Below, one piece after another: positions 17,901 through 50,200 of a stretch of 64,000 nucleotides of DNA. Position 1 is the stretch's first letter, and each line of letters begins with the position of its first letter. Made by a program: the position numbers and the translations under genes. A model generated the notes under the pieces. The model ran no database searches. It saw only the letters and a list, made by a program, of their open reading frames with translations, and was not told where the DNA came from. The DNA is from Klebsormidium nitens (Eukaryota > Plantae > Klebsormidiophyceae): assembly GCA_000708835.1 (NCBI GenBank), contig DF237452.1, positions 1 to 64,000 on the forward strand, in the 5' to 3' direction.

Positions 17901-19599
17901 GAGCGGCCGAGCCCGTTAGGGCCTTTCCAACGGGGGGTCGGGGCCACGTGTTTCCCAACCCGTCTTCTCCGTGGACAAAACTCGCAATGCGCTCTTTGGC
18001 TACTCCCTGTGGAGTGGGAAGAAAAAGTCAATCACCGCATCAGGAATGTCAAAAGATGCCGGGCAGCTACATGCTTGTGGCAGAGAGCATAGCCAAGGGC
18101 AGGGGCAGTTCTAAACCCAATCTCGTCAATGGAGTTGGGGCCGTTACATGGAGAGCTAGAGCAGGAGGAAGCGATTTAGAAATGTGGTCAGAGTGAAAAC
18201 GACTCAGGTTCAAGTCGTACTGTAAGGCCGGTTGGAAGGGTCAGTTGTCTTGCTTCGTGGCAGTGAACATGTTTTTGGTCCGCTACGCGCAAAGTGTTCA
18301 ATAGAACCATGACGATTCCGGACCACAAGCGGGTAACAAGGGATCGTAACCATCTTCGATCCATCTTAACGAATGTTTGAATCTTTGATGCTTTCGAAGC
18401 TTCGCAGCACAAACTTGCTTCTTCTGTACTTCGCATGCAAGTTCGAGTGTCTATATTTGGAGTCTGATGACCACAGAAAACGAATCCAAATGTCAATGCC
18501 AGTGAACCTGTTTTTAAGTCTGCGGAACCTTCTCTGCTTTGAAAAAGTGAATGTTGGCGTACCTTCAAAGACTTGACCTCCCCTTGAATGACAGGGATGT
18601 CAGGGCGACCGGCCAACTCTAGCTGCACAAACCATGCATTCCGTATAAGACAAGTTCGAAATAGAAAGACAACATGATGTTCGCACAAGGAATCATCTAC
18701 GACTCTCTGAAAGGAAAAAAGCGAGGGACTGAGCTTGTTCAATGTTCCCTCTTAGACAGGATCACGTCCGGGAGGACAGAACAGCGCGACACAATCCTCC
18801 AGATTCTCCCAAGGAAAGGAAGATCGGGGTAAGGAAGAGGTAGGTGAGATCCGAAGTAGTCACTACGTCAAGTCGTTAGTGGGGGACTGGCAGACTTCGT
18901 GCAACATTCTAGGCCCCGGAAAGCATCTACCACTCCAGGCAAAGCTTTTGCAGTGAAGGAAGCCCTTACCAGGTGCAGAGCATTAGAAGTAGCCAGCGGC
19001 GTCCGTACGTTCCCAAATATTGTCGTGAGGGCAAGCAATTCCAACTCCGATGACTGCAGCGCCAATAGAATGGCATACGCGTCATCTATGCCTGGGTCAG
19101 TATCAATAACAATCTTCTTTGCATGCGGCCTCCCCCCCCCTCGCCCCAACACAAGCGGACTCTCCCCAATAGAAACATCCGACCCAGCCGGCTGATCCGG
19201 CGGTGTGGACGGCTCCTCAGCCGCCACCTGGCGCTTGTCGGTTGGACCCGAAACCCTTTGCCTCTTTGCCTCCCCCCCTTGCTGTTCCAAAACCCGTTTG
19301 GGATCGCCCTCTCCTGCTAACAGATGCTGGTCCGCGCTCGCGATTGCTGTGACAACAGCGGCAGCGACCGACGTCCCGGGCCCCCCTAGCCGGGACTTCT
19401 GAGCGAAAGAAAAGGGCTGTGCTGCAGCGGGGGGGTCCCGAGAGGGGCTTTCTGCATGCTGGTCGGAGGGGAGGAAAACATCTTGGGAGGGGCCGTCCAC
19501 CGAGGGGGTACTCGACTTTGAGACACTGTCTATTCCGTGCTCGACGGCCTGGATGGAGGAACCTGGGCCGTCGGATGGCTTGCCTTTCAAGCGGTCCAT
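14978..19599 (-). CDS. Inosine/uridine-preferring nucleoside hydrolase (plant NSH/URH family) with an approximately 160-aa N-terminal extension, 7 exons
   Basis: Exons 19599-18970, 18622-18563, 18006-17716, 17366-17270, 16462-16355, 15894-15756 and 15101-14978 are phase-compatible. Motifs are KKIVIDTDPGIDDA, FVHGEDGLGN, ALGPLTNLA, LGGAF...GNVNPAAEAN, ILGDPEAAD, VIGLDVT, MLHDP and VEVAV. The start codon is uncertain because an AG acceptor lies just upstream. Confidence 0.92.
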
Positions 19600-20860
19600 T
19601 GCTCCCACTGACGCCTTGAAAGGCGATCCTGCGACAGGACAAACGACGTGTTCAAGTCCGAGCTGTGTTGAAGGAATGAAGTGCCCTGCTGTTTAGAGGA
19701 TGAAGCTGAGGGGAGGCATTTGCTCAAAGTTTGCCTTGGGGATAAGCAACGTCTGAAAGGATTTCTAGATACATTGGTGCACCAGAAACATGGTCATTGG
19801 ATCAAAAAAGAAAAACATTCTAGCTCACTGATTGTCTTTCAGCAATTTGGGTATATGGAACCGTCAAAAATCCTAGCGTAACAACGGGAGATCTACAAAC
19901 CCTCTCATGCCAAACCCTAAGGAGAGGGACCAAGTCAGATTTGGGAAGGCAATGAACGAGAGCTGAGGTCAGACACTTCTGCAATGAAGCTTCTCAAAGT
20001 ACTGACGGTCTCTCAAGCATTATGCTGTGTCCTGCATTTGAAACCTCGTTCCTGACAGAGTGTGTGGGAAGAACGGGCACATTAGAAGGGCAGAATTGTC
20101 TAATGCAACTCTATTTTGGTGTGCAGCTATAACAGCAAGAGTTTGGCAAGAGCCTGCTGGACGACCAGGCGAAAGAAGGATCGAGCACAACAAATGTATG
20201 CCGATGGAATCACAGGATCAGAGCTTCATTAACCAATCGCTTTCAATCATGAGCCTAAAAGTGAACTGATCTGACCAGGTGTTCTCCTGCGACTCAGAAT
20301 CCGGCAAGTTACGTGTTTCTCATTGAATATTCTGGGGACATGTGCAACCAGAGGCGCTCTCAAATTTTGCAGCTTATCGATGGAAGAATAAAGCTCACCT
20401 CAATGCAGATTCTAGTGGATTGCAGGATTGAGATTCTCCTCCTGCATGAAACAAACTTCAACGAGGTGACAGCACCGTTCTGAAGGAGGGAGATTGGGAC
20501 TTGTGCCAATTGTTGTGGCAGATCTGCTAATATGAGAGGATGAGAGAACCTGAGTACTACCTTTCTTACTATTACTAGTATTAGTATCTGCCACTAATGC
20601 TTCAATTTCAAATGCCAATTTGGCGTCTTCTCTTGCCATTGGCATTGCCATTGGCAGACAAATTCAACCGACTCTGAGGTCCTTGTTCTAAAACTGCCGT
20701 GTCGAAGTGGGGCAGTTGGTCGGTAGTCGGTACCGGGAAAGAAGAAGGGCATGAAGTACGGAACTCTATTCCCGGGAGCTGCTCACCCGGGACGATAACT
20801 TGGATAGACATGACCACATTTCTTCAGAACTGATCGAGCAGCTCAGTTGAATGGACGTAG

Positions 20861-21216: not shown

Positions 21217-21776
21217 TCTACTGGTTGAATTGGCAAAAGCCTGAAGCTGAGCTGTGAGTCCCATTTCTGTGCGATTCTCAAGCGATGAGTTTTCAAATGC
21301 CCCATTCTACCAGTGCATGCCATTGCCTGTTCATTGTAGTTTGTATCAAGGGCGCTAGGGAATGGCTTCTTTGATGTAAGGATTGGGGGTAGATGATGGG
21401 AAGGATTTGTAAAGTCAGCGGGCAAGGCTGTCTGTGCACTTTCCAAAGTACTCTCAAAGACTTGATGAACACTCCCGCATGAATTGATGGCGACTAGTAG
21501 CCGCACTTGAAAGCTGTTTTCTGGCACTCTGATGGATGCAACAAGCATCCACTTAGAGGGTTCATTTGGAAGCAGACGGAAGGCTGCATTGTACTGTAAT
21601 GGCAGATTGGCAGACAGTTGTTTTCATGCGGATCAAGCAGATTGCAGAGGCTTCAGTGTGAACTGCGCAACTTGGCACGCAAGTTCAGCGCTGTTTCAAT
21701 CAGTCAGCAACCACCTTTGAAGCAGCTTAATAGACGTTGTAATATAAGTTCAGAGGCTTGTGTTTCTAGAAACAAA

Positions 21777-24700
21777 ATGAGTTTAATATCAGGAAGGTTT
21801 GTGCTCGCTTGGGTGCTCACAGCGGTGAGCACTCTGTTGTTGCTTCTGTCATACCATGGGTTGCGAGACGCTGTTTCTGCGAAGCTGTGGGAGACAAGCC
21901 CTGCAAATGCTGCCCAGCCAAACCTCGCCGTTCAATCTGGAGACGATCACTTTGGGCCACTCGATACGGCTCAGCAGGTGGAGAAAAAGGACAAGGCCCT
22001 TCCGACGAGTCCCAAACTAGAGAGTGAGCTTGTAACAAGAGAGGGGAACGCTTTTCTGGAGCATCAGACGAGCGCCGTTCGGAAGCTCCAGGCGGCCAAA
22101 GTAGAAAGGACCCTTCAGACAGTGTCTGAAAGTAGTGCAACTAGAGGGGGAGCCAAACCCTCAGGCACCGGGGGAAGCGCTTGGTGGAAGTATGTGGAGC
22201 AACTAGGGGGGTGGCAAAACTACATCGACCTGGTCGTCGCGACCACCCCCCGCATTCACTACCAGGGGAGTAAACCCCACTACCCCCGGGCGTCAACCAC
22301 TCCCAGTGCGCGTGAGTTAGAAAGCCGGTTAGCGCTGAGTTTAACAAAAAAGGGGAGTGCGTCTGGGGTAGCAACCCCCGTCGAGGACGTCAAATTCGAG
22401 AAGGGGAGCGGGGAGTTTTCATGGTTCTTTTGGGCGCCCAAACCGGCTGCGGTTAACTATAACCGCATCATTGAGGACGAGCTTCAGGAGATGGTCAATG
22501 CGCGGCTGCACAAGCGGGGCTTCCCGCACGGTGTGAATAAGCCCTCTCGCGGGGTGAACACCCCCGAGGAGCACCCCGCTGCCGTTCGGGAGCGGCTGCT
22601 TCAAAACCCCGCTTCTTTAACTGCGGATAGCGGACCGGCAACTCAAGGAGAGGAGTCTGGAGATGGAGAAGTCTTAGTCGATGTTGGAGAAGGGCTAATG
22701 GCCGACGTTGGATTCCACGCCAAGAACGTAACTTTGGAACCTGGGTTGGTTGGAGTTTTCATGAGCGGGTGCGGAGAGACGTGCGGACAGCACGGGACAT
22801 GTAATGAAGAAATGGGGCGGTGCGATTGCCCGTGGGACCATACGGGACGAGACTGCGCCGTCCTGGCCATGCCGGCGTGCCGCATTGGCCAGAATGTGAG
22901 CTACCCATGCGCATGCGAAGGCTTGAGCTCTTGATGTCACTCGAAACGCGTCTCTACAATGCTTGATGTTGAGGCTTGGAGTTATGAGGCCCTGCTCAAA
23001 CTTGTTGCATCTCTTCTCTGTCTTTACGTCTAGTCTCACAGTCCTGTGAGGATCCATAAGGCTCTACTCAGACTTGTTGCATCTTTCTTCCGCTCGAAGT
23101 CTCATCTCCTTTTTTGCGTGGACCAGAGACATGTGAGCGCTTTTGACTGCAGAGCGAAATCCGGTTCGGAGGGCCCTTCCAACAAGTGTTTTGTGTACCA
23201 GACAGTGTTTTGTGTACCAGACAGTGTTTTGTGCTCAGACTCTGCACGTCTTGTAGAATGTGTTACTCTTTGGACTTTGATGCAATCAGATGTGACCTAA
23301 CCCTCAAACCCGACACTGTTGCAGCGCACGATTCCGTGCAATCAGCCCGCCCCCTGCGCATGCTACCTTCAATGCGAGCGCTTTGGCTTTGGCCACAGCC
23401 ATGCCTGCTTCGACGTCAACCCGCCGTACATAAGCGAGGGTGCCATATGGAGCGCCCCTCAGGTCAGAGCTTTGGCCACGGAGTCTGCCTTCCGTACCGC
23501 AAGACAGAAGAGAAGTAGAAACAGTATCTCTGAGTTAACGAGATGGAGAAAGGTATTGGTCGGACAGCAGGCTGACACCCGTCCGTCCTTCCTTCGTGAA
23601 TACCTGCGATCTGCCGACTCGCAGGTCGATACGTCTTTTGCGATGCCTGGAAACATTTGTTCCGTTTGCAACTTCTCTCTAACGAATCACGAACGCATGA
23701 ATCAGGTGTAAGGAAAGTGTTTCCGCCATCAAATTCATGTGCCACTCTCAAGCCAACTATGAATGCATGAAGCAGGTGTAAGGAAGAAATTTCAGCCGAC
23801 TGAATTTATGTGCGGGCACATTTGAAGGGAGACCTGCCAGTCTGAACCTTTTCTGAAAGTTTGAAGCCACTTTCTCTCACCTCCTCTTACACCAGACAGC
23901 AAGCCAAAGGAAACATCGTCAACCAGAGTCATATCTTGCTGAGGAACCGCGAGTTCCAACATCCTGTTACGGGATTGTCGTGACACCAATTTTGCGTTGC
24001 TCTCAGGTCGTAATACGGACGGACGGACGCGGCCATGAAGAAGGGTCCGTTCGGACGTCCATCGACGAGTCGGACCCCAATTGGCGGAAAGTACTGCCGT
24101 CCCGCTTCTGCCCGTTGGGCTGCAGCGACGTCGGCTGGTGCGAGCGGGACAGCGAATTGGGCGTCGAGTAAGGACCCTAAGCTCTTCAACACTGCTTCTG
24201 CTTTTGCTGCTTGTCTAGCTTTTCACCCCTCCCAACTCCCTTGAGTCGACTTTGGTGTCTCTCCTCTGTGAAGCTTTTCTACCTGCTCATCCGCTTTCGA
24301 ATCAACTACTCTCTATTTCTGGTCAAATTTAAGCTCTTTGTGCTTCTCTCATTTCCTTCTGGTCTTAGATGCTGTCCTCCCGACCAGCTTTTATCCTTTC
24401 GCTGTTCCATCTCGTTTCTTCCATCCTCAACGCCAGCCTTACGGTTCGTGCTCACGTAGACAAACGCCCCCTTCTCTTTCTTTCCACGATCGTAAACCCG
24501 TTGCCCCCAAGTCTCGCCCCCGCAGCAGCTGCTTGCGCTTTGCCACTGCACAGCTGTTGATTTGTTTCTCCTTTTCGTTCCCTCCCTTCCTTACCACGGG
24601 CCACAACAAAGCGCATCACGCTGACGCATGCACTCATCACCTGCGCAGCCCGCCGTCCGCGCACTGCAACTGCCCGTTCGGCTTCGCCGGCGCCGGCTGC

Positions 24701-27700
24701 GAGATCCCCGAGAAGCGGCGCGACATCCGCGTCTCTTGCCTCAACGACTGCTCGGGGCGCGGGGTTTGCAACCGGGGCTTCTGTCACTGCAAGCCGGGGG
24801 CCTTCGGCATCGACTGCTCGCTCTCTCCGGGCACCCCCAGTCTAGTTTTCACTCAGCCGGGGACGCTTCTCGCAACCGGTTCAGAGGGCCGGGATCGGAT
24901 GCAGAAAGACGAGGAGTCGTGGATCTACACGTACGAGCAGTCACGGCGGCCGATCTTCATGGCGAGGAAGCGCGCGAAGGCCGAACTAGAGCAGGCGGGG
25001 TTCGCGGACCCGCTCTTTGTGCCGGAGCCGTCGCCGTCCGCGACACCGATGAAGAGCTACGGGCCAGGTGGCTGGCGGAAGCAGGTGCCACGTGGCATCC
25101 CTCAGGGCGTGCCAGGTGGCGGCGCGGACGTGGAGTACATTCCGTTCATTCAGCCGCAACTGATTGAGGCAAACCCCGCTGTTCTGCAGCAGGCGATTGA
25201 TTCCGCTTTGGGGGGGGTGGAAACGGGGCAGGAAGCGACCCCCTCCACGAATCCCGCTCTCCTGCAGCAGGTGATTGATTCCGCTCTGGGGGGGGGGGAA
25301 GCGGGGCAGGAAGCGACCCCCTCGCCGCAGCAAGCGGCGGTTGCGGCGGTCGTACTAACCGGGCAGTCAGAAGAGCAGGTTACGGAACTAACCGGTAATC
25401 CCGCAATGGATGTGGGAGCGGCAGAGGGGGAAGGCGACAAAGAGGTTTTGGGGGGGGTCGTTGAGCAGGGCGAGGAGGGGGGGGCGCAGCGGAGGGAGGA
25501 GGTTGAAACGGCGGAAGAGGAAAACCAGGGGGGAACTAGGGGCGAGGGGGAAACGGGTGTGGATGACAGTGCAGGGCCGGAGGAAAAGGCGATCGAAGCT
25601 TTGGAGGAGGGTCTGCCTCTAGTGGAGCACTTTGAGGGAGTTGCCGGGGATGGAGGGGAGACGGGTGGTCTGGTCTTGGAAGAGGATCGAACGGGTGGGG
25701 GGGAAATGGGGCAAGAGATTTTGGGGGAAGAGCAAGACACTCTAGGCGGAGTGCAAGATACTCTGGGGGCGGAGGGCGAAGCAGACGGGGAGGTAAAAGA
25801 ATGGGTTGGTCAGGAGGATCCGGGGAGAATCGGGGAAGCCGTTGACGAGCCAGCAGAGGAAACGCCTCAGTTGCGGAGATCGTCTCGGTTCCGAAAAGTT
25901 TTGGAGTGGGTGGAGTTCAGAGTGGGCGGTGAAGAGCACCGAGGGAAGATGCGAGGGGGCGGGGTGGGCAACCGGGCGCTTCTGCTCGTCCAGGCAGGGG
26001 TTGATGAAGTAGATCCGAATGAGTTCACCGAAGAAAAAACCCCGGACCAGTATCGGGGCGCGGAAATGGTTTCCAGAGGCGCCGCTCACGGAACCGCTGT
26101 TTCCCGGGGATTTAACCGGACCGCGAATCGGAACCCGTTCTTCAACCCGATGAGGACGCCTTCCCCGTCGGAAATGGACGAACTGTATCTAAACCAGACG
26201 GTGCAGAACCTGATTCGGCAGGAGGAGATGCGGTGGTTTGCGCTGAAGCGCGCGTATCCGAACAACACGTTTTACCAGAAGCCGCTGAGCCTGAACATTA
26301 CGCAGCTTCGGCAGACCGCAGTAATCCAGCTGAGAAACGTGCGCCTGCAACTAGAGATGCAGCAGCGGATCCGCGAGGCGAAACTAGAGGAGGAGCGGCG
26401 GTTCGTCGCGTCACTCGCGCACATGCGCAACAAGACGCGCGGCAGGGGGGCGGCGCAGCCCCTGATCTACGTGTACGAGCTGCCCCCCCATTTGAATACG
26501 TGGACGTACGTCCATTCCGGGGCGGGCGCGGATCGGACGGCGCCGGTGATCTTTCTGGAGCGGCTTTTGCATTCCCCCCACCGAACGACGGACCCGAAAC
26601 TCGCCGACTTTTTCTTTGTACCCGCTTGGCCGCGTTGGCACCTCAACCGGGGGCCGTACCTAGAGTCCGTCGTCCAATACCTGAGAGCCACGTGGCCGTA
26701 CTTCGACGCTCGGGGAGGCGCCGACCACATCTGGTTCACGACCGACGACTGGGGTCCGTGCGAGGAAACCGGGTTTAGGAACCGGGTCATCGGCGCGGGG
26801 GTTCTGCTAACCTTCTGGGGTTACGACAAAAACGCCCGGAATGGGGGGGACGAGCCGTGCTTCATTCCCGGGCAGGATATCGTTGTCCCTCCGAATTTGG
26901 AGTACGACATTCTGGCGAAAAGGAAGGAGGCGGAGGAGCGGGGCCGGTTGAGAATCGGATTAAGGAACCGCACGAACTGGTTCTACTTTGCGGGGAGCTC
27001 CGGCCGGCTGGCAGAGAGCACAGGGACGGGGCGGAAGGAGTACAGCTTTGGGGTGCGCCAGGTGAGGGTTACGAATGTTAACCGTGAAATTGAATCTAAC
27101 TCGTCTTCCGTCGTTAGGTCTTCTCACGTGGAAGTCAAGAAGAGCAGCAAGGTCCATTTGAGTTGCTTCAAATTTGAAACTGTTTGGGCTGAAGGACGAT
27201 CGGTCCTGTTGTGGTACACCCAGCGATATAATACTGTCTGGGTTCTTATCTGCACATTCGTGAGCTTTGACTAGGTTGTCTGTCTCCTGAATCTGCTCGA
27301 CTTGGGCGCAGGTTGTGTTGTCAGTGGTTTCCGATCCCGAGTCTGAGCTTGAGGAAAGCAGACTCTATCGAAAATGCTTTGTTCTGTTTGTGGCTGCTAG
27401 TCCCGTTATGCTAATTGAGGTGTGCAGCAACTCGCTGACTCAAAGATCGATTGGAAGCAGAGAAATTTTAACTTTAGAAAGCAAAGGCAGAATAGGGAAA
27501 CGTGCATCCTGTGCTTTCAACCGCAGGGCTTAACCTGCCGTGCAGAGACTCTCCCCTTTGGCGCAAAGCAAACAAGTTGACGGTTACCATTACCGATCAA
27601 TCGCAAAAGGCGGAGTACAGTGATTGGGCTTTGAGCCAAAAACTAAGCTCGTTTGCCTTCGACAACTAAATGCGCCGCACTGTCGCAGGCGGTTTTCGAC

Positions 27701-31357: not shown

Positions 31358-34300
31358 TTAGACGGGTTGGCAGAAGGGATTGGGGCCGTCGGTTCCCCCG
31401 CACTGGTAGAACGCACTCGGGCAGCAGACAGCGGGACCGCTACCACCCGCGGGGTAGCACTGCAAACAGAAGACCGCCCATTCTTAACAATCCAGTAGCA
31501 TTACAATCGGCTCTACGGCCTGACTTTTCCTAGGTTTGGTCTCCCTGTGCAGCGTCTACAAGTATAGCTTTGTGCTGTAAGTTCCAGAGCAGAAAAGACA
31601 AGACTTCTAAGTCGAAGATAAGAGTCGAAACAGAAAATGCTCACAGAATTGAGGAATTGACGAATTTATCATCTGTGACATACCGGTTGGTTGAAATCCG
31701 GATTGGTACAGGTTCCATCCACAGTAGGAGAAACACCGGCCAACAGCGCTGAGGGAGAGGGGGTGGTCCCAATGGGGGTGGCGCCAGAGTCGACACCGCC
31801 ACCTGGAAGAGTGCAGAATTGCACGGCATCGTTCGTGGAGTCGGGCGGGCCGTACTGGCCAGAGCACTGGCTGGGGTTCCTGCAGCAGGAAACGTATTTG
31901 CCGCCAGTGGAGTAGCACTGCACAGCACAAGTAAGAGGGTTAGTGGGGTTACGTGAGTGGTTTGAGAAGGCATGTTTCGATGAAGCATGCAAGTTCGTTG
32001 GTTTCAAGGTAACCTTTACTTCCCACACTGCAGAACAATGCGCGGCGGATGAGAGCAGCTTCACCGAACGAAGAAAAGAGTGCCTACTCAAACGGGGTTA
32101 TAGACTTGACACTTGGACTCCGTCCAAATCCAACACCTAGGCAATATCCTCCTCGAACTCTGGTACTCTGATCCAGACGGGTGGGTCGACTTACGTAGTT
32201 AGCATCGCTTGGGCAGGAGCCGTCAGGATTAGCGGGAACAGTGGTGACTGCAAAATAACGGAGAGAAAGTTTTAGGATTTGTTTTGGTGTCCACCGCCAT
32301 TTACCACGAGAAGAGTACATGCAATCCCCCTACACTACTGAGCACCCAGGATCACGTGGTTGCGAAAATCCACACAGATCGCATGATTGCGAAAATCCAC
32401 AATGATCACGTAGTTGCAAAATTCCACTAAGACCAAGTCTGGATTCGAAAAACCGAGTATTTTGATGCGTTACAACTTTAGGTCGTAACCAAAGAAACCC
32501 ACGCAGCGTCTGTTTCTGAAACTCAGAAGAATCCGAAACAGAGCACTCTCTTCAGAGCTTCGAAGCTTCCTCCTGCATGCGGACTTGTACAAGACATCCA
32601 AGAGAACCCAGTGCATATTCGCAAGAGTCGATCTCTAAGCAAGGGGCGACCAGGAAGAGGCGTCTCCTCACTGTTGCCCTGGAGCAGCTTCCTCATGGTC
32701 GCCTGAACTGCGTGCGTAAACTCATTCCGGGAGACGCGCTTAAGGGCAGGGTGGGCGGCCGCCTGACGCTGGCTGAAGGCCACCTCGAAGGTGGTGAAAG
32801 GAACGGGCGTCACAATAACGTCAGCACCGGTCAGGTCAACGCAGGAGACGGGCTCGTGGTTGATGGTGGCGGGGGGGAGGGGCACCACAGAGAAGCTGCA
32901 AGGACAGATCGTGGCCAAGGTTAGAGATTTGCTTGGTTCAAAAGCGAAATGAGAATTAAATGAATAGAGAGCGTATTTCAATGTGCACAGAAGGATAGAA
33001 GGGCTTGTCCTTGACGCTAAAGGTTGGCTACCATCCAGGGGTAATGTAAAATGCAACATTAGAACCTGCATGCAAAGGGTCACTTAGAAGATCTAATCGC
33101 CAGGTAATGTTCTTTGAGGACACTGTTGCTGATGACAAGCTAATGGCAAGCTGATGTCACTTGAAGCACCCACAAAGAAAGAGAGGCTTCCAAAGATACA
33201 TTTCTGCATGCACCCCACAGGCGCCTTGAGAGCAGCTTAACCCAGTAGGATCAGCAGCGAATTTGGTCCAAGAACTCTCAGGCTCGAAAAAAGCTCAACC
33301 CAGCAGGATCAGAAGCAAATATATGGATCAAGAAAATGTCACGGGGAATAATGGGACCAACAAGGACCTTCTTCACCCACCTCTTGCCAGCAGCCACAGA
33401 CTTCATGACCTGCCACTTGATGTCAGCACCGTGCTTGATGGAGTTGTGGTGCAAGAAGAGGGGAGATCCCTCGACATCGTGCTGCACCATGGTGTGCCCG
33501 CAGAAGCTCCCGGTCTCAGTCTCTGACCCAGCTGCCGCCACTGGCGTCTCCACCATGAAGAAGGGGGTGCCAGTCGCGAGGAACGCGAGCCGGAATGCCT
33601 CCTTGTCTCCGTTCACCAGCTGCTGGAAGGTCGCATCCTTGGCAAGGAAGAATGCGAGGTTGAGAGCGGCCCAAGAGCGGCGCTTGTTGACCACCATCTG
33701 GCCAGACTCCTGCTCCCAGCCCTGGGCAGCAACCTCCAGAATGGACCAGATGGGGTTGGAGGATGCTGTTTGCCAGAAGTCGGGCCAGAAGAGGGCTCCG
33801 GTGGCAAGGTACTCGGGAGAAGAGAAGAGGGCGGCGGGGTTGGACAGGGGGACGTTGTCAGCATCAAGGAAGAGGACCTCCTCAAAGGCAGAGTTGATGA
33901 TGGCCAGGGGCTTAGCCTGCAGTGAGGAAAGGAGAAGGGTTAGTTAGTGCTTTTGCTAGAGGAATAGCAACTCCCTGCTAAGGCTAGATTACAGTCAGCC
34001 AGGAGGTTGGCCTGCTAGAGGAAATTGTGCATGTGCTGAATAGATGGATCAACATTGAGAAAGAAGGGGGACTTGGAGCTGCCAAAAGAAATAATTGCTG
34101 ACTGAGTAGCACTAGTAACCCTCCCTGTCGAGAGACAAGCTCTAGGTACCAAGCAGCAATGCCTACAATATTTTCAGCTCAATTTGAGAAGCATCATGCA
34201 TCAAAAGGTCCAGTAGACACTATGCTCTTGTTGAGAGGACAAATGGGAGAGAATGGTGTATCTGGCCTTGCTATGAGTGAGAGAAACGCAAGTATACAAA

Positions 34301-36132
34301 TCAAGAAGCTTTCCAGAATCGCAAATACAGGGCTCAACACTTCACCATTCACACATGCAGATCAGATTATCCAGAAGGCACAAACATGAACATCAAGAAC
34401 AATCTCAACAGTCTCACAACCCCAAGTCAAGAAGTATTCTCACAATCGCAGGTGCAGGTTAAGAAGCACTCCCACAAAAGCAAGGCGCCCATGCACAAGT
34501 TGAGACCTTTCAACATTTGCAGAGTGTCCCCCACTCTTCCCCGCCCAAAGCAGAAGTGCTAGCTTTCTAAGAGGCAAGAAGTGCGAGCAAGACTACCGAT
34601 ACCACAGGACACTCCCTCTTACCCGGAAATTGCAGAAGGAAGAGCTATTTCATACCCTCATACATGATGAGATAACCACTTCCCTGAACGTTTAATCTAG
34701 TATGAAACATTCCCGCTTCTACCTGATATGACAGACCTCTTACTAATGCAAGGTTTCTTGGACATACACACTTAGTGCAGTAACATCTGTGCGGAAAGCA
34801 TACAACGCTACCTTGGGCGCTACATATGCAGCCTACCCCAACAGAAACAAGGTTGGAGTGGCACTGTTGCCCTAACAGCAGAACAAAGAAATTTGCATCC
34901 TCGCAGCTTTCGAGATCTTTTCGTGAACCAAGGGGTTGACTTCTCAGGGATGCCAGAAATGTCACTACCTGGGGACTGACTGGGTGTTCAAAATGGAACA
35001 CAAGATTCACTCAAAATGCACACAAAATGCACACGTGTTCAGAGAAAGACAACCAACCTGGAACACGCGCTCTCCCTGGCTGGTGACAGTGCTCGTGAGG
35101 TCCTTCGCACTGGCATAGTTGGCTACATTGCGGATCACCAGCTTCCGGTAGGTGCTCGACAGGGTGGCGATAACATCAGCGCTGACCTCACCCGAGTACC
35201 AGATCTGCAAGGGAGGGAGAAAGCAAATTACAGATATTGTCATGTATTGCTCTGGTTCTCCTTGATGTGCACATAGTATTGTCAGCCTGCAGTCCCACAG
35301 GCGAGTGCATAATGCTAGGCGCTGAGCTTAAAGGTAGAAGGACAGAGGAGCTTCTCCATCAATGAGGGAGTCCTGTGAAGAGATGTGGCATTGAGAACCT
35401 GCCGTGTTAACCCACACCAGCACCAAGAACAAACAATTGCAAAGCGCATCATGCACTGACTAACTTTCCTCACATTCTTGAAGTTTCAAGACACTGTTTG
35501 ACCACAACCAGACCGTCACAATGACCAAATAAAGCAATCCTCTATAAGACCCGAACATGGCATAGTGTCATCATAGTTTGTCAACCTAGTTCAGCAATCA
35601 AGAACCAGCTGCCGGATACAGCACCTGCTTTCAAACATCTCAGGTGACTGGGTGGCTAACAAAGCTCACATAGTCTGATTCCTGCGCAAGACCCCCCTTT
35701 TTCTCTGCACTCTTGCACCTCTTCGATCAGATCTGCACTCGTTGTACAATGTACCTCTCCAGATCTCTGACAACAAATTCATTGATTGCACCTGCTGCAC
35801 AAACAATGGCGCCTCACCTCAACAGGAAGGTTGAAGCCTTCAGACTGGAGCGTCTCCAGGATGGTCGGCACATTCACCAGATCCAGTGTAGTCGCCGTTA
35901 TCACCAACCCCCGACCTGAGAAGCGGCCTGTTGGGAACTCAGGAGTCTTAGCCACAACCGACTTCCAGACGGCTGAAAGTTGTGCTGATTGGCTGGCAAG
36001 AAGCGGCCATTGGGGGGAAGACAGGCTGTGGAAGTTGCAATCCACGTGCGGTTCCCGGGGGACGCACGCAGCGGCGCAGAGAGCAATGGCGGACAGACCA
36101 AAGAGCGCCGCGAGGGCTACCCTTGGAGCCAT
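31358..36132 (-). CDS. GT71 / MNN2-like alpha-1,2-mannosyltransferase with signal peptide and two C-terminal six-cysteine modules, 7 exons
   Basis: Exons 36132-35818, 35204-35058, 33916-33381, 32895-32672, 32247-32195, 31917-31684 and 31459-31358; every junction is GT-AG with matching phases (0,0,2,1,0,0). Motifs are GRGLVI, LPVEIWY, KPLAIINSAFEEVLFLDADNVP, TGALFWPDFW, EQESGQMVVNK and GDKEAFRLAF. The C-terminus reads GSCPSDANYCYSTGGKYVSCCRNPSQC...QFC...GTCTNPDFNQPCYPAGGSGPAVCCPSAFYQCGGTDGPNPFCQPV*. Confidence 0.88.
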
Positions 36133-36530: not shown

Positions 36531-36790
36531 TTGACTTTCCGATATTAAAGCTTCTTATCGGATCGGTAAAGTTCAACTTTCCGATAAGTCCTTATCGGTA
36601 CTTTGCTTATCGGAAAGTCACGCCGATCCGATAAGGAATTCTGGCCCTTATCGGAAAATTATGACTTTACCTTTCCGATATCCTTATCGGATCGGCGCAA
36701 AACTCGGGCAACTTTCCGAAAACTCCTTATCGGTACTTTGCTTATCGGAAAGTCACGCCGATCCGATAAGAATCCTATAAGCTTCCCTAT
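36531..36790. repeat. Array of alternately oriented CTTATCGG/CCGATAAG motifs with an internal direct repeat of about 135 bp (fold-back or subterminal-repeat-like)
   Basis: ccttatcggtactttgcttatcggaaagtcacgccgatccgataag occurs at about 36590 and 36725. Inverted pairs are actttccgataag / cttatcggaaagt and cgccgatccgataagg / ccttatcggatcggcg. Confidence 0.75.
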
Positions 36791-36913
36791 CGGGGTTTCG
36801 ACAATAAAGTTTCGAAAATCTCCACGCACCGTCGACAAAATTGCTGCAATCCAAATCAAGTACACAACGTACTGAAAAGTACTGCAAACGGAGCTAAAAG
36901 TAGGGGGGGGGGC

Positions 36914-37535
36914 NNNNNNNNNNNNNNNNNNNNNNNNNNNNNNNNNNNNNNNNNNNNNNNNNNNNNNNNNNNNNNNNNNNNNNNNNNNNNNNNNNNNNNN
37001 NNNNNNNNNNNNNNNNNNNNNNNNNNNNNNNNNNNNNNNNNNNNNNNNNNNNNNNNNNNNNNNNNNNNNNNNNNNNNNNNNNNNNNNNNNNNNNNNNNNN
37101 NNNNNNNNNNNNNNNNNNNNNNNNNNNNNNNNNNNNNNNNNNNNNNNNNNNNNNNNNNNNNNNNNNNNNNNNNNNNNNNNNNNNNNNNNNNNNNNNNNNN
37201 NNNNNNNNNNNNNNNNNNNNNNNNNNNNNNNNNNNNNNNNNNNNNNNNNNNNNNNNNNNNNNNNNNNNNNNNNNNNNNNNNNNNNNNNNNNNNNNNNNNN
37301 NNNNNNNNNNNNNNNNNNNNNNNNNNNNNNNNNNNNNNNNNNNNNNNNNNNNNNNNNNNNNNNNNNNNNNNNNNNNNNNNNNNNNNNNNNNNNNNNNNNN
37401 NNNNNNNNNNNNNNNNNNNNNNNNNNNNNNNNNNNNNNNNNNNNNNNNNNNNNNNNNNNNNNNNNNNNNNNNNNNNNNNNNNNNNNNNNNNNNNNNNNNN
37501 NNNNNNNNNNNNNNNNNNNNNNNNNNNNNNNNNNN
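36914..37535. other. Assembly gap (N run)
   Basis: Continuous Ns preceded by a G homopolymer. Confidence 0.99.
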
Positions 37536-39043
37536 AATCCGGTTCCTGGATTCCGCTCGAGTGTATGAAGGCATGAGGGTATTAGGACCATGAAGGGTAA
37601 CTGGCCCCTGGGACGGGAGGGTTAGCTTGGGGGTTAGACTGGGTGCGGACTGCGGAGCGTGCAAACTTTGAGTTTACGTTTTCAGTTAAGTTTTGCTGTT
37701 ACCCTTCGTAGCGCTTATACCCTCATTGGAGCGACTGAGGGTTAATGCTAACGGTTCCTGGGGTAACCGAAATCTTCGATCAAAAACCGACGATCGAAAT
37801 TCGAAAATGTAGGCGCTCCGCAGTGGCGGCCGCCCGGGCCACCGCACCGGGCACTGCATTGTCTGAATCCAACTCTCAAAACCCCCCGCACCCGTTCCCC
37901 CGGCTATAGCCCGGTCCACGATGTTCACCAGATCGACGACAGACGGGCCCTGGCCCCGGAATACAATATTACCGATCAGAGGGTCAGAATATCCGGCAAG
38001 AATATTGAATATCAAAGCTGAGCAGCTGGAGAGCTCCCCACGGTGGCGTAATACTAGGTATGGGGGTTGTACGGTTGTGGAGCGGGTGATGGATTGGGTC
38101 GGTTTCCGGTGTTAGTCAAAAACTGAGCAATGAGTTACGAATTACACAATGAGAAGCTTTCAAATTGCAACATATACGCATAATTTCATTTTGAACATTC
38201 CAGTTGCTTATTCGACCGTACCTATTCATTGCTGGCAACTCCCTTTCAGTACGGTTACCGGTAGGCATCCTGAGGGGCTTGTCACCTGAAATTTGGAAGC
38301 ACCGGGCACCACAGCTATTTAACCGGACGATCAACACAAAAAGCTACCTGCTCCGCACCCCTATACGTATTAACGACCCTAACCACCAAACAATTGCCCA
38401 AACGAGTCCCCCGGGGCCCGGCCTATGAACCGAGAGACAAGCCTGAGCCTGGGAGTGGCCGGCCACACCATAAATTGGCATATGCACGAGGCAAGCCGCC
38501 TGCTCGGCCAGGCAAGTTGGACTATGAAAGTTGCAGTCACCGTGCACATACAACGAGCCTCGAGGGACGTCATCAAGTACGGTACGCCACTTGGGGTTCG
38601 CGAAGGGCCGCGGCGCCAGAAAGATCAATGATTGAGTCTGATGGCTACCGGTAGTAGGTACCAACTCCGAGGTACCAAGGTACCGGAGTACCTAGGTAGG
38701 TACTTCTCCAGCTATACCTACGGTAATTATATTAAATAGAGCTGAGCTGTGAGAGCCTGTGACCCGTGGCTGCGCATGAAATACGGAAAAGGTACGTACC
38801 AGTCCCTGCCGTATGACGATGTCAGAAAGGTATACCTACCATGCCGGTATCGTGCTCACAGTGAATACCTGGAAGCCAAAACCGTACGTCTGACGTCACT
38901 CGATCTGCCGTACAAAAAACCATTTCAGGTGTACCTATTGGCAGATTTGAAGTCACGAGGTACGTGCTACGGTAGGTACCGCTGCCATTTCAAGAACGAG
39001 CCGTGGGCCCGTGGCCCGTCAGCCGTCAGTGAATGTACTAGCA

Positions 39044-44200: not shown

Positions 44201-47200
44201 GCATCTGACAGTGCTTATGTCATCAAACAAGTACGCAGAACGTTCTGCGGAAAAGAACCGAAAGGACCGGAGGCGGGAAAGAAACGAAAGACAACGGACG
44301 CACATTCACAGACGACCGCGGGTTCACAAACTCGCAAAGCGTGAAGAGGAGTTCAGACAACGAAAGCGCTTCAGAGGGGCGTATTCTCACTCGGGCAGTC
44401 CGTCCTGGGCGTGTCCCGCAGTGTGAATAAGTCCTCGAACGTCGCCGCCCAAGCGTCGCGCTTCGTCAGGAAGTCGGAGGAGAGGTTGAACAGTTTCTTG
44501 ACGGTCGCCGGAATTGATGAGTGCTCGAACTGGCTGCTCGGACTGGGCTTCAGTCGGGGCTCATGCACAACTGCACAATGAGCGCAATTCAATGTCAGCG
44601 ACAAAAGTCAGATCTTGCGAGCGGTATCGACAAGATTTAATAAGGAATTCAGATGATTAGTTGTCCGAACATTGGGAGTCGGCGAGTTCCTTAATGGTCG
44701 GGCTGGGCTTCAACCAGGGCTCGTGAACTACTGCACCAATAAGCGCAATCGAGTGTCAGTGACCGTCAGAACTCGTAAACAACTGCACCATTAAGCGCAG
44801 TCGAGTATCAGTGAACGTCAGAACTCGTTCAACGGCACCAATAAGCACAATTAAGTGTCAGTGAAAGTCAGTATCTTGCGAGCAGTTCAACAAAGCCTCA
44901 AAGGAACCTCAGATGATTTCCAAACTATGTGTAAGTAGGCAACTTTTAGACTGGTCGGGCTGGGCTTCAATCCGGGGCTCGTGCACAATTGAACAAAGGC
45001 GGAGATCAGACAGTCAGTGACAAAGTCGGGTCTTGCGATCTCATATGCTTATCATTCCGGATGTTGTGGGAATCAACGGATGTTTGGAAGGCTGGTAGAG
45101 ACCGGCTTGAGCTGCGGGTCGTTCAATTTGCCCAGAAAGGAAAAGGTCGCGCTTCCATTTTGTCTCTGATTTGTCACTTGAGGTAACCATGTCAGGATGC
45201 AATGCTCAGACTCAGCGTTCAAAAGCATCCGAAGAGCAGCTTTGAGGGGCGAAAATACTGACGTCAAAAAAAAAAACAAGCGCAATATAAGCCGCAACTG
45301 ATAAACTGATCAGAGAACAACTCTAACAAGACTAGTTTGAGCAGCCAATGCGAGAAAAACGGGGAACCGACAAATCTTCAACAGGTACTCCAGTCCAGCT
45401 TGCGTCGGCGTTTGCAGATACTCTTGTTGACAGTACGATTACGATCATCCGTCATCTCCGACTCTGCTTCGAAGATATCGACTTCGCAACGTGGCCTCAG
45501 GATCCTTTATTCAGGAGCGAAAGCAACGGGCCAACGCACAGTAGCTACTTTGGAGAAACCATACCAACAAAATTCTCCTGAAAACGGGATTTCTGTGGAC
45601 GGAAAGAAGCGAGCCAACGCAAATCAAACGCAATGTTCACATCATATATCAATGTTGGTACGTCATGGAAGGCGCCCTCGCTGTTGGCTTTTACAACTTG
45701 ACGGCAGACCATCGCCGTGGCCGCATCAGAACGCCGCTCATCCGCTAGCTTTGGAGTCACAAGCTTTATACCACAACCATCAAGTCCAATGCTTTCCAGA
45801 CACTCAAAAGCATATGAGCGCTACCCAAAGCGTATGCAAAAAGCCCTCACCAGTGCCTTTCTCGACCCACGGCGAGATTGCCAGCGTGGCAACCCGCACC
45901 CCGAGCCGGTCAAACCCAAAGTTAAAGGGCGGCGGCCCGGTTATTCCGTCCGGGTTAGGGATTCCGGTTACCGGGGTCGGGACGTGGTCGAAAAACCCGC
46001 CGTGCTCATCGTACGTTACGAGCAGCAGGGACTCGTCCCACTGAGGACTTGCGCGCAACGCCTCGTAAACTTTCTGCAGGAAGGTATGGGGGAATTTCAG
46101 TCTTAAACCTATTGTTTTGATCCAGTCTGATATCGTGTCTGTTCGTGAGCGACTGATTTGATATTTATCTATGTTCGGACCCTTCAGATCTTTACTATTG
46201 GAGTATGTTCTGTAAGGACTCGTCCCATTGGCAATTGGCAAGCACCGCCTCAAGGGCTTTCTACAACGGAGCCGGGTGAAACATCTGGTTGAAAAGTCCT
46301 CCTTTCACCCTTGTTGGTTCTGATCACCCGTTCGGAGTTTTTTGCGAAACAGCGAGTGAGAAAAACATTCAACAGAGGTCTTTGAGGGGCTCTTAAAAAG
46401 CTTTCCGAAACGCAGGGCAGAAGGGCACAGCAGTATGATTGAAACGCAGAACGAAAGGAAGTTCGACGCAGGGGGGACGTGGTAGATTTTGACGCCCCCT
46501 TAGCTCGACGAAGGACAACATGATTCACAATAGCGCGTTTATATTGGCAGGAACGGCAGATATACTTCCAGCACATGGCGTTACCATTTCGCGCAAGCAG
46601 ATTGCACGCATCGTGGATTGTCCTGCAGAACGGAGTTGAAAATCGAGGACGAGGCTCAGCTTTTAGATTTTGAGTTCCGGTTCCCAACCAAACCGGTCGG
46701 GTTACCAGCCAAACCACACATGAGGGAAAACCCCAAAAAGACTCGGAAGTTTGGTTCCTGGGCTCCCAAATGCACAGCCTGATTTACAGTTTCCAGAATT
46801 CAGTATTGATTGCTTGAACCCAAACCCTTTCCCTTGCACAGAAACATACAATTCTCCTTCCCTGCGCCCCAAGGCCCAACTTTGTATAAGAGATATGAAA
46901 AGTTGTTACTCCCAATCACAGGATACCCCCCACCAACAACCCCAGATCGAATTAACCTAAAGGAAAGGCTCGCTCCACCCTTCAGATCGAGCCAGTTCCA
47001 ATTAGGCTCTCAGCTGAACCCAGAAGCTTCTCCTCACCTACCAGACAAACTTTGTAAGGCTTCGACTCCAAATGCGGATGCGAACCCAAAGCTAATCCCA
47101 GGTGCGGATACAAACCCTAAACCTGAACCCAAGATTTGGAATGCAAACCGGAGCTCGAAACCACATCTTGACCCTCAACCGAAGACCCACCTTGAGCATC

Positions 47201-50200
47201 TTCTGCCCTTCTGCCACGTCATGGCTCGGGTGATTGTCGTTACGTTCTAACCTCGAAACCGAAACCCTGATCTTAACCCTGAAACAATGGCCCACCTTGA
47301 GCATCTTCTGCCCTACCCTCACGGCGAATTCTGACCCTAAAATTGAAACCCTTATCGTAACCCTGAGCCGACAACCCACCTTGAGCATTTTCTGCCCTTC
47401 CGCCACGTCATGGCTCGGGTGGTCGTCGTTCGCCGGGAAATCCGGAAGGTCAAAATACCGCGGCTCCAGGATGACGTAATTCGGCAGGACCCCCCTTTTC
47501 GCGTGGTTGAAAAAGAGGTCGAACGCATGGAAGTTGAACGCGCGGCGCACGGTGCGCAGGTTCCGGAAGAAGAGCGTCGATGGCAGGTTGGCGAAGTAGA
47601 CGCCGAAAGAGAGACCGGATTCTTCGATAGAGTCGAAGATGGTCTTCTGGGGGAAGCCGTGGGTCAACTCCTGCAAGAGAAGAAGAAACAGTATCATGAA
47701 GGAGCTGCGGAAGCTGATTGTGAGATAAGTTGTCAGATCCAGGGATTGGGGTGCTCTTAGATCTGTTTCGTACAGGCCGTGCGTCAGCTTGTGCGAGTGA
47801 AGGAAGCACGAGTGTGATAGTCCGCAAAACGAATTCGTGTTTCAGTTTCGGTTTCAGTATACCTTTGATATCGGTAGAAATTTTTTGCAAAATCTCGAGG
47901 GTCAAGCCTGCGGGTAAACCATGCACCGGAAGTGGGGTCCATTAAACCGTCCGACGCAAATCCTCTGCCCGAAACCAACAATGAAACATCGGAAGAATGC
48001 AACGGAAGAATGCAGAGAGAATTCGGAGCAAAACGAGACACGGACTCTCGTCAGATGGTTCTCTAATGAGCAATGAAGATGACGTCAAAGCGTGTAGATG
48101 TTGTGGCGCAAGCCTGGGGATACGAACAGCTGTGTTCCGGTACACAGAATTGTAGTATTGCTTGCTGACCTTCTTATCATTCCACGTGGCGCCATGTGAG
48201 GTCGCCGAGTGGATGTAGAGCCGATTGGGCTGTGTCGAGGACGGCACCGCCGCAAACCACCTGCCAAAGGACGCGCCACACGTCAGCATGAAGTCATACA
48301 AGATGGATCGTCAGAGAGCGCAGGTACCCAGGAAACCGAAACACAGAAAGTAGTGTGTAACATAGGGGTTCTCGTAAATCGCGCTCAATGTAGAGATGCC
48401 AGTGGGTATGAGGAACCAAATTCTGGGCAACGGACACGCATTCTGCAATTGCAATCTAGCAATCTGTTTTGGTGGGCATAGGCTGACTGAAAGTTATTGT
48501 AATATGCAAAAACGCCCCTCGCGCGGCTCCTGACGAACGAGAAGAGGACCCGTAAGCAAAACTGGTCATGTTAGTCAGACGAAGCCTTGTGATATTACTC
48601 AAACTTGCAATCCAGAATCCAAGCAGCAATGAATTCTTTGGCACAGAAAAGTAAGCTGGTGTTGACAAAACTCGATTGTATCAGCTTGTGGGCAAACAAC
48701 GGTCGAATGAGCGACTGTAAAACCTTCAAGCGGCTCGACTCTTTGTTCGAGAGATGTAGCGATATTACCAGCTGACCTGTCAAAGAGCGCGAACTCCATG
48801 GCGAGTGACGTCAGCGAGGAGACGACTTCGGGCCGGAAGGCGCTCATGACGCGGCGCCCGAAGCCGGTGAACATGTTGTTGGCGTTCTGGACGAAGCCGT
48901 TCATGGGGGGCGGGTCCTGAAGAGAGAAATGAAGGGGAAGAGTTCAAAGAATCCTTCGACATACTGAAAATTTATTAGATATTCGAACGGACTCCGCTTT
49001 GCAAAAGAAGAAAGAGCTTTTTTTTTGGAAAAGGTGATATGAAAACAAAAATAAAAAAGAACCCAGACATGATGTCGGAAAGAAGACTGATACTCCGATA
49101 CTAGGGGCATCAGATTGGGGGAAATATTCACAGGAATCGATGCAACGGGTATTGACCTTGAGTGTCAGGGGTATGTTCTGAGAACGATCGAAACCGTGCA
49201 ATCGGCCCTTGTTGGCGTTCTGGACGAAGCTACTCATTAAAAGCAGGTTGTAGGGGGCACAAAGACCAGAAAGAACCAAGAAATGATGTTGAAAGGGAGA
49301 CTTCCAGTCGATAATAGGGGCTGCAAATTGCAGGGAGCGGGTGGAATCAATTCAACAATTTGAATAACCACGGGTATGCTCGGAAAGACGACGATTGGTA
49401 GTCCATCGCATGAACCCTTGATTGGCAAACCGATCATGCGGGGGATTGCCTACTGAAAGTAGGCATCAACAGTCTTGTGAAACCAAAACCAGGGATGAGT
49501 TTGTGGCATCGTCTCTGATCGAGTGTGGTATTCGAGTGTGGTATTTGAGGAACCAGTCAAAGCCACGTTGAAATTCTCGCGTGTTGGGCAAAGAAATCAT
49601 CACGACAGGATTCTGGGGAAGAAAAGGGAAAGAACGATGGACAACCAAACCTAACCTGAAGAGACATTCATAGCGCGGAACAACAGACATTGCGACTCCT
49701 CAAGAAGTAGGAATGAAAGGACGAGATGCGCTCACAATCTGAATCTGATGACTGTCTGAGTACGAGACAACTTGAAGTGTCGTTGCAGGCCATCTGAAGA
49801 TATCAAAGCTTGTCGCGGACTTTGAGCTACAGGTAGCATGCACGGAGGGTCCTGTGCAGGTTGTTTGACGTTTTTTGGGGATGTTCTGAAAACCTGGATT
49901 TCTTAGGCCCAAGACATCTTCTACAAGGCTTCTACTGGGCCAAGTTAGACCCTGACCGCAAGTCCTCAGAAAGGCGCACATATGCTCAAGAATGACTCAT
50001 GCTCTACTCATCAGAGCTTTAACGGCCAAAGACGCTGCACAAAGCTCTGTTTTAACAAACCCTGACAAGCGTGTGCTTTTGCCCTTTCTTTCTGGCTGAC
50101 GTTCCACGGGGAGACTTGTTGAGGTAGACATGGTGATACAAATGTGGAAGTTCGGAGTCTCAAAGCAGAGCCTTGGCAGATCGTGAAGAAGTTGTAAGGG

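Follow-up and report, generated by a model that had tools for sequence, protein, structure and literature searches.

Does the alga Klebsormidium nitens make a mannosyltransferase that carries its own cysteine-rich tail, and, if so, what could such a tail do? This question is raised by a gene on the minus strand of contig DF237452.1 (assembly GCA_000708835.1), in a window of 64,000 nucleotides (nt; positions 1 to 64,000). Klebsormidium, a green alga that lives on land, is near the ancestral line of the land plants. The original prediction, made from the letters of the window, was that a catalytic domain of glycosyltransferase (GT) family 71 (GT71) is joined by splicing to two C-terminal six-cysteine modules, and that the product is a soluble enzyme that brings its own glycan-targeting modules. 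Glycosyltransferases with a binding appendage of their own are, to our knowledge, rare, and where they are understood, as in the GalNAc-transferases, they are mechanistically informative. The reading that we favor, and that we hold to be reasonably probable, is one intact seven-exon gene for a secretory GT71 enzyme, whose two-module tail would serve as a binding appendage in the Golgi.

One gene from catalytic domain to tail

The gene extends on the minus strand from 36132 to 31358 and consists of seven exons, with all junctions being GT-AG. Its coding sequence of 1611 nt (536 codons and a stop) contains no internal stop codon, and the GC content is 57-67 % in the exons versus 43-50 % in the introns. 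Exon 1 (35818..36132, 105 codons) contains the start codon, a signal-peptide-like N-terminus and the conserved motif CVPxEPxVDCNFH; it also begins the GT71 domain, which continues through exon 2 (35058..35204, 49 codons, phase 0 at both ends) into exon 3 (33381..33916), where the catalytic core with its DXD motif is located. The C-terminal part of the catalytic domain is encoded by exon 4 (32672..32895), which ends in ...RKLLQGN with a phase-1 donor. Exon 5 (32195..32247, 53 nt) provides a connector, the first cysteine (Cys1) of module 1 (codon 32215-32213) and the six-residue loop that follows it, and ends in phase 0. The translation of exon 6 is CYSTGGKYVSCCRNPSQCSGQYGPPDSTNDAVQFC, followed by a linker rich in G, T, P and S, and then by CTNPDFNQP; accordingly, the exon includes Cys2-Cys6 of module 1 (31813..31917, CYSTGG...CC...C...FC), the 34 residues of the linker (31711..31812), and Cys1 of module 2 with its eight-residue loop (31684..31710, phase 0). 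Exon 7 (31358..31459) reads CYPAGGSGPAVCCPSAFYQCGGTDGPNPFCQPV plus stop and comprises Cys2-Cys6 of module 2 (31459-31370), the residues QPV and the stop codon (31360-31358).

The three junctions that had been predicted to connect the catalytic domain with the modules are all GT-AG and keep the reading frame, as claimed: junction 32672/32247 is in phase 1, whereas junctions 32195/31917 and 31684/31459 are both in phase 0 and lie directly 5' of TGC TAC (Cys2-Tyr). When the homologous protein P0002 (539 amino acids, aa), from a close relative, was compared to the window by tblastn, it was collinear with all seven exons, and the same was found for two further homologous proteins tested likewise. 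Residues 1-107 of P0002 map to 36132-35815 (exon 1) with 62 % identity; because residues 107-155 adjoin exons 1 and 3 without a gap, no exon is missing from the 1141-nt intron 2. Exon 4 has 72-76 % identity to its paralogues, exon 5 can be aligned to the segment TVPxxxxxC...ANY in P0002, P0005 and P0003, and the linker is conserved among homologues as GGGVD...TP..TTPSPS.

Support for the fusion comes from the nucleotide sequence that encodes P0002. This 2287-nt JGI contig (L001) contains one uninterrupted open reading frame (ORF) of 1620 nt (nt 94-1713) with flanks that resemble untranslated regions, and its product has the signal peptide, the GT71 domain and both modules. The equivalents of exons 1-4 in L001 have 87-94 % nucleotide identity to those of the K. 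nitens locus L019 (KFL_010750010) and abut one another; the introns of ~1.15, 1.24 and 0.36 kb that lie between the exons of L019 are all absent from L001. Therefore, L001 is spliced, mRNA-derived sequence that reads from the catalytic domain into the tail. In addition, the K. nitens gene KFL_001710080 (P0005, 529 aa, 'Glycosyltransferase family 71' in UniRef) has the complete architecture as annotated; this protein and P0006 were found by a word search with the tail of P0002. The intronless frame of L001 and the annotated KFL_001710080 thus bear out the predicted fusion, and the sequences indicate that the GT71 domain and both cysteine modules are one gene.

The remaining K. nitens paralogues have the same organization under imperfect gene models. 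P0006 (KFL_010750010, 636 aa, locus L019 on DF238024.1) has a Pro-rich aberrant C-terminus after GGGVDNGGTP; the exons of module 1 and module 2 are intact in the genome at L019:8116-9320, and the 3' end of this gene model is probably wrong. P0003 (KFL_003270110, 210 aa, locus L002) comprises GT71 exon 4 and the tail. At L002:5259-9719 (contig DF237276.1), the annotation divides one paralogue into two genes, a 327-aa model with PF11051 and the 210-aa KFL_003270110; where it does so, tblastn reveals a frame change of one base in exon 3 (near L002:7407), which is either the mark of a young pseudogene or an assembly error, and 12 of the 12 tail cysteines are kept despite it. Loci L002, L019 and L020 share the exons of the window gene, and their six introns are at the same positions. 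None of these homologues is identical to the window gene, which is therefore a further paralogue, bringing the number of K. nitens loci to at least four.

Repeats are found within and next to the gene. Intron 4 contains a 27-bp unit repeated 3.1 times (32350-32432). Upstream of the start codon, at 36540-36900, there are repeated units of ~40 bp rich in CCGATAAG (cggatcggcgtgactttccgataagcaaagtaccgataagga), which adjoin an assembly gap of 642 N (~36900-37540).

A GT71 catalytic domain with a signal-peptide-like N-terminus

The assignment of the catalytic domain to GT71 held up. Exon 3 matches Pfam family PF11051 (Mannosyl_trans3, CAZy GT71) at E = 1.1e-30 with 107.4 bits, compared to a cut-off of 22, and the homologue P0002 matches the same family at 6e-42 with 144.3 bits. 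The DXD motif is D-A-D at 33865-33857 (FLDADN); it is kept in all paralogues and, in the alignment with the solved structure of the GT71 enzyme MNT2 (PDB 7XJV; E 4e-6 over ~130 residues), is matched by LMDSDT. The catalytic domain is well conserved, with a nonsynonymous divergence (pN) of 0.13-0.17 versus a synonymous divergence (pS) of 0.4-0.65. As judged from these matches, the product of the window gene is a predicted mannosyltransferase of the GT71 family, that is, of the Mnn2/Mnn5/Mnt2 type with a GT-A fold and a DXD motif.

The yeast alpha-mannosyltransferases Mnn2, Mnn5, Mnn1 and Mnt2 share with the algal enzyme the PF11051 domain, the aligned DXD region (in the case of MNT2) and the secretory pathway, whereas the identity between the algal GT71 and yeast MNT2 is low. 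These yeast enzymes are type II membrane proteins and are not known to have C-terminal Cys-rich modules. Unlike them, the algal proteins combine a signal-peptide-like N-terminus with a two-module tail.

The signal peptide that had been predicted is clear in the paralogues and ambiguous in the window gene. P0002, P0005 and P0006 begin with a hydrophobic run of 11-12 residues, followed by Arg or His and by SxAA|LC, a pattern that fits a cleaved signal peptide rather than a membrane anchor. The N-terminus of the window gene (~36132-36067) has MAPR and then ~19 uncharged residues that end in AAA|CVP, and its signal peptide is probably cleavable.

The two modules and their evolution

Read from the minus strand, module 1 is C-x6-C-x9-CC-x5-C-x16-C and module 2 is C-x8-C-x10-CC-x6-C-x9-C, so that both spacings, as well as the G/T/P/S linker between the modules, are exactly those of the original prediction. 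The knottin-type order of cysteines, C-C-CC-C-C within ~30-45 residues, is present in both. A six-frame search of the 64 kb with the regular expression C-x(6-12)-CC-x(4-8)-C-x(6-20)-C recovered only the two modules and one further match, an antisense artefact inside a GC-rich exon of another gene.

In both modules, a phase-0 intron precedes Cys2, as had been noted, and this position is conserved in four K. nitens loci. The shared intron position, together with the cysteine frame and the CY..GG...CC motif, makes a common origin of the two modules by duplication plausible. Of the exon duplication that had been proposed, the common intron position stands, whereas alignment of the module-1 and module-2 profiles with hhalign gave a probability of 0.6 %, which is not significant.

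Conservation of the tail was assessed in five sequences (the window gene, L001, L002, L019 and L020). All 12 cysteines are conserved in all five tails, and the other conserved positions are CYS.GG...CC...CSG.(Y/F) in module 1 and C..AG...P.(V/I)CC....(F/Y)QC..T....PFC in module 2. The tail diverges more rapidly than the catalytic part, amino acid identity between the window gene and the other homologues being 50-60 % in the former versus 74-76 % in the latter. It should be noted that pN is nevertheless lower than pS in all tail comparisons. For module 2, the window gene has 83-87 % identity to L019 and L020, with a pN of 0.065-0.08 and a pS of 0.40-0.50, which is clearly indicative of purifying selection on this module. 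Gene conversion as the cause of the likeness of module 2 among K. nitens paralogues was rejected: synonymous sites in this module have diverged as in the catalytic exons.

The tail has a narrow distribution. When the 78-aa exon 6 was searched exhaustively with HMMER against 1.84 billion cluster representatives, four proteins were obtained at E<=0.001; three are true matches and all of them belong to this clade, and the fourth (P0004) is a low-complexity/retroelement artefact. Three word searches with the tails, covering proteins of 43-136, 116-368 and 296-943 aa, returned only GT71 paralogues of the same clade. The E-values of these searches are scaled to billions of sequences, so that remote kin could be missed. 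A metagenome scan with the tail alone found nothing, and a scan by GT71 alignment found 16 GT71-like metagenome loci that are more distant (26-52 % identity) and all without the tail. Thus, similar tails on other GT71 proteins were found among Klebsormidium paralogues and were lacking at these distant loci, and the tail appears to be restricted to GT71 paralogues of Klebsormidium, with at least four K. nitens loci and one transcript of a relative.

Possible function of the tail

Under the reading that we favor, the gene would encode a 536-residue secretory protein with a signal peptide, the GT71 domain, a short connector, module 1, a flexible and probably O-glycosylated linker and, at the C-terminus, module 2. 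Because such an enzyme is without a membrane anchor, the tail is most likely a binding appendage. In the Golgi lumen, it would keep the soluble catalytic domain bound to an acceptor glycan or polymer, or to a membrane-bound or luminal partner, and this grip would either raise the local concentration of substrate or retain the enzyme. The logic would be that of the C-terminal lectin domain of GalNAc-transferases or of the carbohydrate-binding module (CBM) of a secreted glycosidase. The lectin-domain comparison, which was already part of the original prediction, appears reasonable.

The polypeptide GalNAc-transferases (GT27 with a ricin-type lectin domain, CBM13) are the best functional analogy for the tail. 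They are Golgi glycosyltransferases with a C-terminal, linker-attached, disulfide-containing appendage, as the algal enzyme is predicted to be, and their lectin domain binds to glycan and directs the enzyme on its substrate. The two systems differ in several respects: the GalNAc-transferases belong to another GT family and are membrane-anchored, and their appendage is a beta-trefoil of ~130 aa, whereas the algal tail consists of two modules of ~40 aa with an unrelated fold and its binding of glycan is putative.

Several observations count against this reading. The hydrophobic run of ~19 residues in the window gene could be a type II anchor rather than a cleaved signal peptide. Carbohydrate binding by the tail is putative, and the tail is without similarity to known CBM or lectin families by sequence or by fold, as searched with Pfam, PDB, Foldseek and VIA-align; in addition, the structural model of module 1 is of low confidence (predicted local distance difference test, pLDDT, ~53-61). 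A glycosyltransferase in the cell wall would be without GDP-mannose, and a purely extracellular role is hard to square with catalysis. The transcript-like support comes from L001, a relative's paralogue, rather than from the window gene itself, and the tail of L001 is far more divergent than its catalytic part, so that L001 could be a chimera of two paralogous transcripts, each of which would nevertheless need to include GT71 sequence. Compared to L019, its pN is 0.02 in the catalytic exons and 0.24-0.30 in the tail (L001:1320-1710), where amino acid identity is 53-67 % and synonymous sites are near-saturated. Fast evolution of the tail, exchange of tails between paralogues, and a chimeric assembly joined inside the GT71 part are all possible causes of this divergence, and under each of the three some GT71-containing transcript bears the tail.

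The alternative that survives best takes the tail for a generic tag that anchors the protein in the extracellular space or cell wall, or docks it to other proteins, instead of a module that targets an acceptor glycan. The protein would then be exported and tethered in the wall or matrix, where the GT71-like domain may bind or transglycosylate. We consider this possible but rather unlikely. A signal-peptide-like N-terminus, a linker rich in P, T and S, and terminal modules are all present, and the C-terminus has no retention signal such as HDEL, as would suit a tag. However, the three word searches and the exhaustive HMMER scan found no sequence similarity of the tail to other proteins, and the conserved DXD motif and catalytic domain speak for a functional enzyme that uses nucleotide sugar, and such an enzyme needs the Golgi lumen; a location in the wall would rob this well-conserved enzyme of its donor.

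A bolder version of the binding appendage, which seems unlikely to us, is that the modules are a new, genus-restricted CBM family and that the enzyme is a soluble Golgi GT71 with its own grip on the acceptor glycan, the first such GT71. The modules might also be deeply related to the CBMs of knottin fold (hevein, CBM1), at the root of the lineage of land plants.

Affinities of the modules

A further alternative, and a distinctly doubtful one, is that the modules are true, very divergent members of the knottin-fold carbohydrate-binding families, either hevein/CBM18 or CBM1, as the original prediction had suggested. Several features are consistent with such a membership: the six-cysteine C-C-CC-C-C frame, the CC..(F/Y)QCG.TD...FC of module 2 along with GGSGPAVC/QCGG, three conserved aromatic positions per module, and a similarity to the CBM1 spacing C-x10-C...C-x9-C. 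More generally, hevein/CBM18, six-cysteine hevein-like peptides and fungal CBM1 are, like the algal modules, small (30-45 aa) and disulfide-rich, with conserved aromatics and P/T/S linkers, and the six-cysteine hevein-like peptides and knottins have the same C-C-CC-C-C order.

The searches gave no support to this membership. In Pfam at E<=10, with each exon and with the complete modules cut from L001, the tail had no match, including PF00187 and PF00734; HMMER filters discard many matches above E ~0.1, which limits the reach of this negative. Neither phmmer nor a five-row profile of the modules, both run against all PDB sequences, found hevein, WGA, CBM1 or knottin chains. The only PDB match of the profile, the lectin BP39L, is spurious, consisting of seven ~3-bit matches to a Cys-free repeat. 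Searching the ESM Atlas by features returned no usable neighbor of the tail.

The signature residues also differ. The PROSITE signature of hevein is C-x(4,5)-CCS-x2-G-x-CG-x(3,4)-[FYW]-C. In the algal modules, the loop from Cys2 to CC has 9-10 residues, compared to 4-5 in that signature, the paired cysteines are followed by Pro or Arg (CCP/CCR) and not by Ser (CCS), and the CG...F-C spacing in module 2 is x7. CBM1 has a frame of four cysteines and an N-terminal QCGG, whereas the algal modules have six cysteines, and QCGG is located at Cys5.

Structure prediction likewise lent no support to this membership. The AlphaFold2 model of P0003 (210 aa) had a mean pLDDT of 46.7, with 72-80 in module 2, and fold searches with it were dominated by the helical hairpin of the GT71 C-terminus. 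For the tail alone, the mean pLDDT was 63.1 (75-82 in module 2 and 53-61 in module 1), and each module was modeled with four short strands that form two beta-hairpins. With this model, Foldseek against PDB gave no match at E<=0.001 and only rows with E>=5 to generic Cys-rich repeats (TNFR, ErbB), and VIA-align gave none with Z>=2 among 48,161 representatives, nor in a second look; hevein-type and CBM1 folds were not found by either program. It should be noted that small domains score poorly in fold searches and that the pLDDT of the tail model is 55-82, so that the lack of a match does not amount to a new fold. Altogether, the algal modules differ from hevein, CBM18 and CBM1 in loop lengths and signature residues and have no hidden Markov model, profile or fold match to them; membership in these families and a match to a solved fold, both expected from the original prediction, thus failed to appear. 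On the predicted models, the modules are best described as small domains, presumably stabilized by disulfides, with two beta-hairpins each, and they seem to belong to an undescribed sequence family that is found only on a small clade of GT71 paralogues.

Finally, that the cysteine exons form a separate downstream gene, or that the fusion is an artefact of gene models, is highly improbable: the K. nitens annotation does divide one paralogue into the 327-aa and 210-aa models, and the annotated product of the window gene did not turn up in the tail searches, but the division matches the frame change in exon 3 of that paralogue and its 210-aa model still joins GT71 exon 4 to the tail, the sequence upstream of 32247 (exon 5) has no ATG that starts a signal peptide, intron phases match across the window gene, and L001 and KFL_001710080 are continuous through the catalytic domain and the tail.

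Neighboring genes

Another glycosyltransferase with extra modules of extracellular type is located 4 kb from the GT71 gene. It is a long open frame on the plus strand (24338-27274) with EGF-like repeats, an extended acidic region of low complexity and an Exostosin domain of GT47 (PF03016, 2.8e-19). Upstream of it, the ORF at 21618-22934 has an EGF-like cysteine pattern at its end. On the minus strand, there are two exon-sized ORFs, one of the inosine-uridine nucleoside hydrolase family (18871-19608, PF01156) and the other of the phosphoesterase / non-specific phospholipase C family (47095-47697, PF04185).

Significance

We found no description in the literature of an architecture with GT71 and two modules, in agreement with the original prediction, which knew of none. 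A 2019 survey of plant lectins includes CMT1/GNA fusions and has nothing for GT71 (PMC6362431). The homologous proteins are already public, annotated only as GT71 or hypothetical. Compared to known systems, the architecture appears to be a lineage-restricted form of a known theme, in which a small module is appended to a glycosyltransferase.

At the level of annotation, of the four gene models that this clade has in K. nitens, two have an erroneous tail and could be corrected. With respect to the biology of the alga, the analysis suggests that in Klebsormidium such enzymes have arisen several times by paralogy, from a mannosyltransferase of fungal type and a disulfide module not yet described. 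Should the tail be no more than an anchor, it would be an example of how a soluble Golgi enzyme is retained. If the tail binds glycan, it would define a new CBM family and would be a pointer to the mannose-containing acceptor of GT71 enzymes in streptophyte algae.

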